A DNA stretch of 64,000 nt from Klebsormidium nitens (taxonomy: Eukaryota > Plantae > Klebsormidiophyceae). Made by a program: the position numbers and the translations under genes. This document shows, in pieces, positions 60,201 through 62,881 of the stretch; positions within the stretch are counted from its first letter, which is position 1; each line of letters begins with the position of its first letter. Under the pieces are notes generated by a model, which worked only from the letters and a program-made list of their open reading frames with translations, did not search any database and was not told where the DNA came from. Location of the stretch: positions 82,228 to 146,227 of the forward strand of contig DF237152.1 of the NCBI GenBank assembly GCA_000708835.1, given 5' to 3'.

Positions 60201-62881
60201 TGCAGTCAGCTTGAGCTGGAAGCCTCCGAGACTTACCAGCGGGTTTTTACAGAAGCGGCCGTCCTTAAGGGCGTCGCACACGACGAGGACTGGGTCCACA
60301 CTGCACACAGAATCGGAGCAAGTGAGCAATCTTCACATGATGCTGCTTCTGCGAAAGACTCCGCACTTTGCTTGACATACTCGCTGACATCACACTCACT
60401 GCAGACGGAACCTGCGATTTGCTTGTGTAGCAAATCTTCTGCAGATGCTAGAAGAGATCGCACCTGCAGCTTGATGAATAGTACAGATCCCCCCCACCAA
60501 CCCCGGCCTATTCTACGTCGAAACTGTAGTTGACACTCTGCCGTGCTCTGACTAGGAGCTATGTCCAGAACCTGCCTCCCCTACAGCGAGACTAGAGTCA
60601 ACACTTTGCCAAAGTTAGAAATAAGTAATACTTCTCTTCTTCAGGAAAACTGCCATGTCAATCAGCAAAAAATACAAAAATGGCCCTGAAATATGGGGCC
60701 ACGTGCCTGAATAATGAGAGCAAAGAAACAAAAAGGCCTCAAGAAGGGCGCCAGAGTAGGGCTCAAGACCTCTAAAGACCTCGAGACCTTTCAATGCTAC
60801 AAGACCTCGAACTTTTACAGAGGTGGTGACGCTACTCACGAGGGCAAGAGCGCGAAGGCACAGAACGAGCTCGCGCGCTCGGTCTGGGGGCACCCGGGCA
60901 GGCCGAGGTTCGACTTAAACCACTGCCGATGCTCGTCAACAAGGGACACAAGAGCAACAGGCGTCTGCAGAGGGGAAGAGCGGGCGGTGAGAACGGGGTA
61001 CTCACGAGGGGAGAATGACGTATTGGCAAAACGACAGCCAACGGGGAACTTCCCTGGGAGCCCCGGCGAAGCCAGTGTTTGATTTCCACTGGGTAATTTC
61101 GGAGTCAGTCAGTGTGATGAGAGACACGGTGGTCTGCAGTAGGGGGAGAACACGCGGTAAGGAGCGGGGGGGCAGTAAGGAGGGGGGAGCAGTCTGTCCA
61201 AGCGCTAAAATCTGCTTCTTGACTATTCCCTCTGCTATTTAGCACCAGTCTGTATCCACGTTCTAGGTCTCTCATCGCTAGGACTCTCTCTTGCCGTCTG
61301 ATTTGAGTCCTAACGGAAGCACCAATGAAGCAAGCATTGCGTCTTTCCTATTTGGAAGGAAGCCAGTGCTCCATTGGAGTGGAAGAATTGCCGTCATGCC
61401 CTTTCTGAGACTGTCAGCTCAAACCGAACGCACTTAGGAAAGCAGACCCGAAACACCCTTGGTGAAGCCCCTAAAGCATGATTCAGCACTTTACCCCCGC
61501 GCTTTGGGGCAAAAAGCTCTCATATCTCAAAAAACTCCACCCTCTGCACCTGATATGGTACTCGAGCACTGAGTGGCAAGAGCCCCAAGTTGTTTGGTAC
61601 ACATTCTTGTCAACCCTCAAGGAGAATAAGACGCTGCTTGCTCACATGGAAGATCATCGACGCAAGGGCGGTGAGTCGATCATACCGGGGCTCTGGCTCC
61701 TGCAAACAGAAGCAAAGCAGCCGAGTCACAAAGAGTATCCCCTTGTCTGGCTGCTGTGGAAAGTGTCAATGAGATCGAGCGGCTGTTTGGAACAGATCTG
61801 GAGTCTCCCAAGAGGAGTTGCTGAGGCCTCTCGTGGCAGCTTCAGATGTTCTCTCCAAGTTGACGAAAGTCTGGCCCTCTCGCACAGAGACCACCATAGA
61901 AAGGTCTTTACACATACTGCCTCTTGAGCATCCAATGAAAATGTGATGGAAAATGTAATGAAAAATGTGATCCATGAGGTATTGGCCTTGACGAGCTCGG
62001 CAGCACATCGACCTAATAAACAGCCCCCACAACGTATGGCATCGATCGGGTGTCTTACCGTGTCTAGGATATTATAGCTCCTCAACACGTTCACGCGAAA
62101 TTCCTCGTTGCTTGGCTTAGGGGCCCCCTGCAGAACCATAACCAGACAGCGGTAAGTCATAACCAGGCAGCGGTGAGTCATAAACAGGCAGCGGTGAGTC
62201 ATATGGTACCAGGCAGCGGTAAATCGTAAACAGGAAGCGGTAAGGCAAAGGAAGAGACTGTCCTCAAGAAAATTTTGACGCGCCATTTTTAATCAGAACT
62301 CAAAAATGACCCGATAAGTAAGTCGAAGGACTTATGAGGGGCACAATATGCTTTAATAGATACCCAAACCCTAATTCAAAGACCCAAAGAAGGCACCATT
62401 CAAGATACAGACGTTTCTTATGCTCAACGCACTTGGGGTTCAGCTGAACTTCGTCGCCCTCTTTCAATGCCAGCGCCGTCTTGAGAGAGTGAAAGATACT
62501 CAAGAACCGCGACGATCGGTGGAAATTTGTTAAAAGCGACTTTCACAACGCCAACTCATTTTCTCCAGAGGCGCACCGCCTCATCGAGCCCCACACCTGT
62601 GGATCATACTCGGACTCTGGCCCTGGTCGCATCACAAATCCCACCGGGCTTGGCCGCCTCGCCGCGGGGCAAACAAATGGATCGTGCTGCAAAGGGCCGA
62701 CGCAAGTGAAGCCAATGCCTGCTGACGTCATGTCTGAGGTGGCAGCGGCCCCCCAGGCGGGGGCGGATGCCACCTTGGTTGCACGAGTGTCATCGCCCGA
62801 GGACGGCCGCTTGACGCCCCTAGAGGAAGGCCCGTTTGCATGCCAAGGCTCCTCGTGCTGGTCTGAAGAGCGCCTCGCCAT
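51256..62881 (-). CDS. Hybrid sensor histidine kinase GAF - LOV-like PAS - HisKA - HATPase - pseudo-receiver - receiver, ~1080 aa; exons 62597-62881, 62059-62127, 61646-61699, [61006-61133 OR 60840-60964], 60237-60300, 59822-59898, 59391-59475, 59008-59098, 58474-58613, 57826-58016, 57358-57504, 56468-56612, 55732-55871, 54766-55097, 53418-54148, 52474-52792, 51757-51791, 51256-51468
   Basis: GAF: NEEFRVNVLRSYNILDT|EPEPRYDRLT...SFC...DALKDGRFCKNPL|VIGEPHIRFYAGAPL...GSLCIIDFEPR; PAS: PIVFVNEG..TITGY...HCGSLLEGPLTD...ILNYRKDGTPFWN; H-box SHEIRTPMNAI; N/G1/F/G2 boxes QILTNLLSNSAKFT, DTGIGI, FEAFTQ, GGTGLGLAIS; REC VVEDN...LMDVQMPEMDG...IIALTA...YLSKP. Exons sum to 3243 nt with the 125-nt exon. 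The first and last exon limits are less certain. Confidence 0.9.
52150..52370. repeat. Degenerate GTGTCCAAAA-core minisatellite in a kinase intron, including a perfect 22-bp tandem duplication (52288-52331)
   Basis: Many (g)tgtcc(a) cores; gtactcatggtgtccagaaaga twice in tandem. Confidence 0.7.
53658..53762 (-). repeat. Five in-frame 21-nt repeats encoding approximately GVSANxE within the pseudo-receiver of the kinase
   Basis: Units cccgtttgcactaaccccctg etc. on +; translate to RVSANRE-GVSGNTE-GVSTYGE-GVSAKRQ-GVSANG. Confidence 0.85.
54247..54657 (-). repeat. Four degenerate copies of the acceptor plus G2-box start (GTGLGLAISK) in a kinase intron
   Basis: Copies at ~54247-54284, 54373-54420, 54502-54550 and 54615-54657 versus the true junction at 54121-54160. 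Confidence 0.75.
60840..60964 (-). CDS. Candidate mutually exclusive GAF exon 4b ([42 protein letters not shown])
   Basis: Acceptor ctcttcccctctgcag|acg, donor ccctc|gtgagt; 125 nt; canonical GAF consensus. Confidence 0.88.
61006..61133 (-). CDS. Candidate mutually exclusive GAF exon 4a (TTVSLITLTDSEITQWKSNTGFAGAPREVPRWLSFCQYVILPS)
   Basis: Acceptor ttctccccctactgcag|acc, donor ccctc|gtgagt; 128 nt, open, same entry (0) and exit (2) phases as exon 4b. Confidence 0.8.
62137..62245. repeat. Five ~21-nt tandem repeats (CATAACCAGGCAGCGGTGAGT) immediately upstream of the kinase exon-2 acceptor
   Basis: Units start at 62137, 62158, 62179, 62200 and 62225. Confidence 0.85.

Follow-up and report, generated by a model that had tools for sequence, protein, structure and literature searches.

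Can one histidine kinase gene of the streptophyte alga Klebsormidium nitens make two sensors by choosing between two versions of a single exon? Mutually exclusive exons (MXE) are a classic animal route to protein diversity and are considered uncommon in plants and algae. The gene that raises the question lies on the minus strand of a 64,000-nucleotide stretch of the K. nitens genome (contig DF237152.1, positions 82,228 to 146,227; hereafter the window) and encodes a hybrid histidine kinase whose GAF sensor domain is served, at one position, by two adjacent exons, 4a and 4b. An earlier note, drawn from the letters of the window alone, had read these twins as an MXE pair that swaps the core of the GAF domain. 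From sequence comparison, assembled RNA contigs, a diverged relative and structural models, we conclude that an ancient tandem duplication of exon 4 very probably created a two-member MXE cluster in this GAF/LOV-like/histidine kinase/receiver gene. Each mature mRNA would take either 4a or 4b, giving two full-length kinases that differ in just 41-42 residues.

Exons 4a and 4b are tandem homologues

What the earlier note had said of the letters themselves held throughout (Table 1). Exons 4a and 4b are adjacent across a 41-nt gap, stop-free and matched in phase; each acceptor has a pyrimidine-rich tract ending in ctgcag, and both donors read gtgagta. The note had also claimed that including both exons or neither would break the frame. 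Translation of the spliced products bore this out: a single exon, whichever of the two it is, keeps the reading frame, and 4a plus 4b, or neither, leads to premature stops.

The encoded peptides are identical at 17 of 42 positions (pairwise BLASTP E = 4e-10). When all six frames of the 64-kb window were searched, each peptide recovered no sequence but its own and that of its twin (E about 1e-6; the next match had E > 0.1), so their similarity is not a matter of chance; the search also found no third copy of exon 4 and no duplicates of exons 2, 3, 5 or 6. The duplicated unit reaches beyond the coding sequence, taking in ~28 nt of acceptor flank (22 of 28 identical) and the 7-nt donor, and the two flanks form the best-matching pair among the gene's eight confirmed acceptors. 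Codon by codon, the twins agree at 63% of second positions, while third positions have reached saturation (32% identical); the duplication is therefore old.

Assembled transcripts carry one exon or the other

To see which exon enters the message, we used the assembled RNA contigs of four runs (X1, X11, X7 and X19) from four studies, placed on window positions 59000-63000. All four single-inclusion joints implied by the MXE reading were present. Exon 3 was joined to 4a (61646/61133) and 4a to exon 5 (61006/60300) at contig depths of 195.6 in X1, 17.7 in X11, 79 in X7 and 10.6 in X19. The corresponding joints of 4b, from exon 3 (61646/60964) and to exon 5 (60840/60300), had depths of about 101 and 94 in X1, 14.8 in X11, 44.9 in X7 and 0 in X19, and were thus seen in three studies. 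Every joint has GT..AG ends, and window and contigs agree letter for letter. Neither a 4a-to-4b joint nor an exon 3-to-exon 5 skip joint occurred in the assembled contigs of the four runs.

Exons 4a and 4b form the two arms of an assembly bubble whose summed depths roughly equal those of the flanking constitutive contigs. Exon 4a is the major form, at about 1.2-2 times the depth of 4b, which accounts for ~34-46% of transcripts in three runs; in X19, where depth is low, a single 2021-nt contig reads exons 2-3-4a-5-6-7-8. Across a broader set, sampled words of exon 4a were complete in 20 RNA runs from 7 studies. Word shares of at least about 0.20 (18 runs) would fit the presence of exons 3, 4a, 4b and 5, and shares of 0.10-0.12 (the two smallest libraries) that of 4a without 4b.

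Could misassembly, a paralogue or genomic DNA in the libraries instead account for the 4b contigs? The run type was only guessed ('RNA?'), and X1 contains low-depth intronic sequence (60276-60869). However, the 4b contigs are spliced to exons 3 and 5 with GT..AG ends and zero differences from the window in three studies, intron 3 has zero RNA depth in all four runs, and exon 4 of the K. nitens paralogue is only 73% identical in protein. We regard such an artefact as hardly credible, and rejected a paralogue product as the source of these contigs.

A separate observation concerns the intron after 4b (60301-60869), over which low-depth RNA contigs lie in X1 and X7, the X1 stretch being the one named above. 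X1 also contains a minor joint, 60464 to 60300, that marks an alternative donor. The coverage may mean that the intron is removed slowly, or that a minor non-productive form exists.

Both exons are maintained in a diverged relative

The earlier note had proposed looking for a conserved exon pair in related algae. Our best profile match was P0001, an 83-residue open reading frame from a Logan assembly, on a 2934-nt contig (L001, run SRR14092358). This contig represents the orthologous locus in the genome of a diverged relative and contains exons 3, 4a, 4b and 5. Both twin exons are retained there with their lengths and a short spacer, here 39 nt. All splice sites are intact (AG/GT), and the introns beyond about 30 nt have fallen to the identity of shuffled sequence, that is, to saturation.

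We compared nonsynonymous (dN) and synonymous (dS) divergence, and their ratio omega, between K. nitens and the relative. Exon 4a is identical at 27 of 42 residues (dN 0.32, dS 0.90, omega 0.35, Fisher p = 0.014) and 4b at 41 of 41 (dN about 0.04, dS 0.72, omega about 0.05, Fisher p = 4e-7). Protein change is therefore strongly unequal, with 15 of 42 residues altered in 4a and 0 of 41 in 4b (p = 1e-5). Yet omega lies below 1 for both exons in this one diverged relative, and selection maintains both copies. Many 4a residues that depart from the family consensus are the same in K. nitens and the relative, which argues for a selected identity of 4a rather than decay. The note's further claim, that 4a keeps the GAF consensus under purifying selection, stood as to selection and only in part as to consensus: part of the consensus is kept, and P2, R13, F16 and T28 are lost or shifted.

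These data also bear on the idea that one isoform is mere splicing noise, produced from a decaying exon copy that the spliceosome still recognises. Exon 4a does evolve much faster than 4b, and neither the annotation nor X19, a run of low depth, contains 4b. Nevertheless, both exons are in frame and abundant, with 4a in the majority and 4b reaching the share given above in three runs; the length, phase and splice sites of both have been kept while the introns saturated, and both omega values are significantly below 1. We consider splicing noise very unlikely. Homology, matching phase, near-equal length, one copy per mature RNA and retention of both copies elsewhere, the marks of an MXE cluster born of tandem duplication, are all found in this pair.

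Searches for additional loci found nothing further: a database search with the 83 residues of P0001 matched only itself, metagenome scans with a 4a profile and a back-translated 19-residue 4b peptide gave no matches, and among short database proteins there were no 4a-type fragments with enough common words.

Exon 4b is the ancestral type

We searched a profile of both exon peptides against 1.8 billion representative proteins and recovered 9,407 relatives. Among 269 fetched homologues, 267 scored better on the 4b form of the GAF domain (median 26 bits), and the other two are Klebsormidium proteins that contain 4a. In an alignment of 243 family members, 4b retains all near-invariant residues of the segment; 4a has exchanged P2 for T, R13 for T and T28 for V, has lost F16 and has gained residues in two loops. 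The four affected positions are 90-100% conserved across the family.

Among orthologues from conjugating algae, the annotated or assembled proteins on record (Spirogloea with three copies, Cosmarium, Mesotaenium and a EukProt transcriptome) all have the 4b-type segment only. The GAF region of the window gene is 57-72% identical to those of the Spirogloea, Cosmarium and Mesotaenium orthologues and of the K. nitens paralogue P0155, with a common architecture. P0155 has identical intron positions and a single 4b-like exon 4, with no 4a-like remnant in its intron. Exon 4a itself was seen only in Klebsormidium: in K. nitens, in the relative described above and in K. subtile, whose transcript P0156 likewise includes 4a, there altered at one residue. 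Taken together, the homologue scores, the orthologous proteins and the single-exon paralogue place the duplication in the Klebsormidium lineage, after the paralogue split. By this sequence comparison, 4b is the ancestral type and 4a the derived, Klebsormidium-lineage copy.

The gene's own NCBI product, P0157 (1031 aa), contains 4a and not 4b. The copy questioned in the earlier note was 4a, but 4a is the major and annotated form, and 4b the ancestral and unannotated one. Since the public annotation holds the 4a form only, it misses the isoform with the ancestral GAF domain.

The exchanged segment builds part of a putative ligand pocket

Pfam gave no match for the single exon pieces 4a and 4b, which are too short. 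Membership of the swapped region in the GAF family (PF01590) instead follows from the Pfam assignment of P0157 and from the predicted fold. An AlphaFold2 model of the 4a-form GAF domain (P0157 residues 46-212, 34-row alignment) had a mean predicted local distance difference test score (pLDDT) of 93 and a predicted template-modelling score (pTM) of 0.89. Its best solved match is the GAF domain of Dcsbis (PDB 4zmu; TM score 0.90, root-mean-square deviation 1.8 A, 37% identity); many further GAF domains rank behind it. A model of the paralogue's 4b-type GAF domain has unchanged topology, with one loop two residues shorter. At the sequence level, 4b matches 4zmu (Dcsbis GAF residues 51-86) with E = 1e-5; a PDB sequence search with 4a returned nothing at E <= 10.

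In the model, the swapped residues occupy positions 42-84: strands 1 (44-50) and 2 (54-61) come first, then a loop that contains a short strand (69-71), and last helix 3 (77-80). The note had assigned strands and the loop of the GAF pocket to this segment, and the AlphaFold2 model and the comparison with Dcsbis add helix 3. In Dcsbis, a large hydrophobic pocket lies between a floor formed by the sheet and a roof formed by helices 3 and 4 (PMC4937426). The same domain dimerises via helices 2 and 5, and its ligand is neither cAMP nor cGMP (PMC4937426). From this layout and the swapped positions, choosing 4a or 4b would replace two floor strands and one roof helix of the putative pocket. The dimerisation and transmission helices lie outside the swap, and the two isoforms share the same LOV-like PAS domain, kinase core and receiver.

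The isoforms could therefore couple different GAF inputs, or a canonical and a remodelled or blind pocket, to one phosphorelay output. They may differ in ligand specificity. A possible, if on balance doubtful, alternative concerns function only and leaves the splicing unchanged: the swap may be an on/off toggle, in which 4b forms a ligand-competent canonical GAF domain and 4a a folded one that is ligand-blind or constitutively signalling, so that the 4a:4b ratio would set the share of the kinase pool that heeds GAF input. Such a toggle would suit the changes of 4a at the four conserved positions, the change of even the invariant Q14 in the relative's 4a, and the PDB sequence match found for 4b and not for 4a, while the 4a fold is still predicted with high confidence. 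Yet 4a is the major isoform in all four runs, and its specific residues are conserved between two diverged species at an omega of 0.35, which points to a selected new surface rather than mere loss.

How one exon could exclude the other

Within the MXE cluster that we favour, exclusivity would follow from the spacer. The sole plausible branch point for the 4b acceptor is a CTCAC in the spacer, separated from the 4a donor by about 17 nt and from that acceptor by about 23 nt. So near the 4a donor, it would sterically block splicing of 4a to 4b. The remaining confirmed introns of the gene measure 292-705 nt. Because double inclusion or skipping shifts the frame into early stops, nonsense-mediated decay would be expected to clear any such transcripts that leak through. 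After duplication, 4b would have stayed conserved and 4a would have evolved several-fold faster in protein, yet remained open, spliced and dominant.

Competing RNA base-pairing of the docking/selector type, as in Dscam or ATE1, could in principle set the choice or the exclusivity in place of the short spacer. The 5' part of 4a (61102-61125) is complementary to an element of intron 3 (61267-61290; 24 nt, 75%) and also to 60388-60401 in the intron before exon 5 (13 of 14). Matches of such size are, however, at about chance level in 1.4 kb, there is no equivalent pairing at the corresponding places in L001, and the spacer of 41 or 39 nt already accounts for exclusivity. We judge RNA pairing improbable as the cause.

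Several points weigh against the steric, mutually exclusive scheme as a whole. Assembled contigs lose rare variants, so low-level double inclusion or skipping may exist, and their depths are a rough guide to abundance only. The 4b bubble contigs extend just 28 and 25 nt into the flanking exons. Contigs of a further source, organism B, are letter-identical to K. nitens and so probably represent the same strain under an older name rather than an independent organism. The exon pair was found in just one diverged relative, and searches for more came up empty. Calling a 41-nt spacer too short presumes a minimum intron length for the K. nitens spliceosome, and since this GAF subfamily has no known ligand, we can only infer that the isoforms receive different inputs.

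A wider proposal, which we put forward tentatively and think more apt to fail than to hold, is that regulated either/or splicing switches a photoreceptor-like kinase between the ancestral 4b pocket and a neofunctionalised, lineage-specific 4a pocket that senses another cue, as part of a genome-wide MXE expansion in this early-diverging streptophyte. If true, animal-style diversification of the proteome by MXE would have arisen independently in the plant lineage and would act on environmental sensors.

Architecture of the kinase gene

The gene product has the domain order GAF, LOV-like PAS, HisKA, HATPase_c, a degenerate receiver-like region and REC. On exon pieces, Pfam identified HisKA (E = 7e-11), HATPase_c (E = 3e-14) and Response_reg (E = 9e-13), and PAS_9 also matched; the H-box SHEIRTP is present in the exon at 57357-57512. 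One protein thus combines HisKA with an H-box, HATPase_c and a C-terminal receiver, and is a hybrid histidine kinase. We found P0157 by searching with an orthologue. It matches the window exons, is named 'Putative histidine kinase containing cheY-homologous receiver domain [Klebsormidium nitens]' at NCBI, and has precomputed Pfam assignments to GAF (PF01590), PAS_9, HisKA, HATPase_c and Response_reg.

Table 1. Features of the kinase gene in the window, and of the twin exons at the orthologous locus L001
Feature	Position	Strand	Size and phase	Basis and remarks
Hybrid histidine kinase gene	51259..62923	(-)		Pfam on exon pieces, P0157 match, RNA-contig exon joints
Exon 1, coding part	62597..62881	(-)		RNA contig 62596-62923; reading frame open from ATG
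Exon 3, constitutive	61646..61699	(-)	54 nt, phase 0	Encodes end of GAF helix 2; common donor for 4a/4b; RNA joints
Tandem duplication at 3' end of intron 3	61157..61193	(-)	17-18-nt unit, 2.1 copies	Tandem Repeats Finder (TRF) and direct repeat; just upstream of 4a acceptor
Exon 4a	61006..61133	(-)	128 nt, phase 0 in, phase 2 out	Direct reading, scripted boundary check
Spacer intron 4a-4b	60965..61005	(-)	41 nt	Sequence; without an RNA joint removing it
Exon 4b	60840..60964	(-)	125 nt, phase 0 in, phase 2 out	Direct reading, scripted boundary check
Exon 5, constitutive	60237..60300	(-)	64 nt	Common acceptor for 4a/4b; brings back phase 0; RNA joints, frame check
Exon 4a in L001	1615-1742		128 nt	
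Exon 4b in L001	1782-1906		125 nt	

The true start codon is likely 62881-62879, 50 codons upstream of the annotated P0157 start, which would be an internal Met; the K. subtile transcript P0156 starts at the position equivalent to the 62881 ATG. RNA contigs run past 62923 into sequence from about 63541-63570, and this joint indicates an intron in the 5' untranslated region, with an untranslated exon upstream beyond 62923. In P0156, the first 540 residues are 96% identical to the product of the window gene, and the last 567 are 45% identical to that product and 53% to the paralogue P0155. This transcript is probably a chimeric assembly joined in the conserved kinase core, or else a sign of a third paralogue.

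The canonical LOV flavin-binding motif is NCRFLQG. In the PAS domain of the window gene (58354-58689 and 57783-58217 on the minus strand), a cysteine sits in a LOV-like GLHCGS..GP motif, which differs from the canonical form by one extra residue and the lack of an arginine. Relatives from K. subtile and Cosmarium carry the database name 'putative LOV domain-containing protein', and we treat the domain as a putative LOV sensor. A survey of eukaryotic histidine kinases counted five LOV-type members among 67 K. nitens kinases (PMC6324907).

About 125 nt upstream of the real HATPase G2-box exon, there is a partial, diverged copy of that exon's start (54241-54285 versus 54114-54158, minus strand; GMGLGLAISKRL versus GTGLGLAISKDL, 10 of 15 identical), probably one of the decayed exon copies that the earlier note had mentioned elsewhere in the window. 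At its 3' end, intron 1 is filled by a 21-nt unit repeated five times in tandem (62137-62244 on the minus strand; TRF score 124), immediately ahead of the exon 2 acceptor at 62128, with a branch-point-like CTTAC or CTCAC in each unit. Each copy of the similar 17-18-nt unit upstream of 4a has a branch-point-like CCTTAC, and judging by this motif the repeat may have a role in splicing. Introns that end in multiplied branch-point motifs may be characteristic of the K. nitens genome.

Comparison with known systems

The closest mechanistic parallel is alpha-tropomyosin, in which exons 2 and 3 are mutually exclusive, as Smith and Nadal-Ginard reportedly showed in 1989, because the branch point lies too close to the upstream donor. 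The K. nitens pair shares with it adjacent homologous exons, a very short intron, a branch point near the upstream donor and one exon per mRNA. It differs in that the steric block would here follow from the spacers of 41 and 39 nt together with the absent joint, in a streptophyte alga and not an animal, and in that both K. nitens exons are of length 3n+2, which adds frame incompatibility as a second safeguard.

In Dscam, 14-3-3 zeta and ATE1, MXE clusters are governed by competing RNA structures (PMC7797038, PMC6071210). Like these, the K. nitens cluster originated by tandem exon duplication, and one exon is picked from the array; unlike them, it has two members only, and no conserved docking/selector complementarity was found in the window and L001. 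On the protein side, the K. nitens GAF domain belongs to the same subfamily as that of Dcsbis (PA2771) from Pseudomonas aeruginosa. Unlike the K. nitens kinase, however, Dcsbis is bacterial, is encoded by a single exon, has a diguanylate cyclase output and lacks alternative pocket segments. By architecture the window gene is one of the streptophyte-algal histidine kinases with a GAF and a putative LOV domain, the LOV-type KniteHK group of the survey (PMC6324907). Our literature search found no publication on MXE splicing in Klebsormidium or on an alternative exon 4.

What sets this locus apart is that part of a sensor pocket is exchanged while the signalling output is kept, which amounts to a natural domain-core swap experiment. 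The exon pair gives a way to approach the ligand of a GAF subfamily that is very widespread in bacteria and algae. The asymmetry that followed duplication, with 4b frozen and 4a fast but maintained, makes the pair a good model for neofunctionalisation at the level of the exon. With its RNA evidence and its conservation in a relative, it is also a clean case of MXE for a streptophyte alga. MXE clusters as such are familiar, and the K. nitens pair is a new, well-supported case that acts on a sensor pocket.

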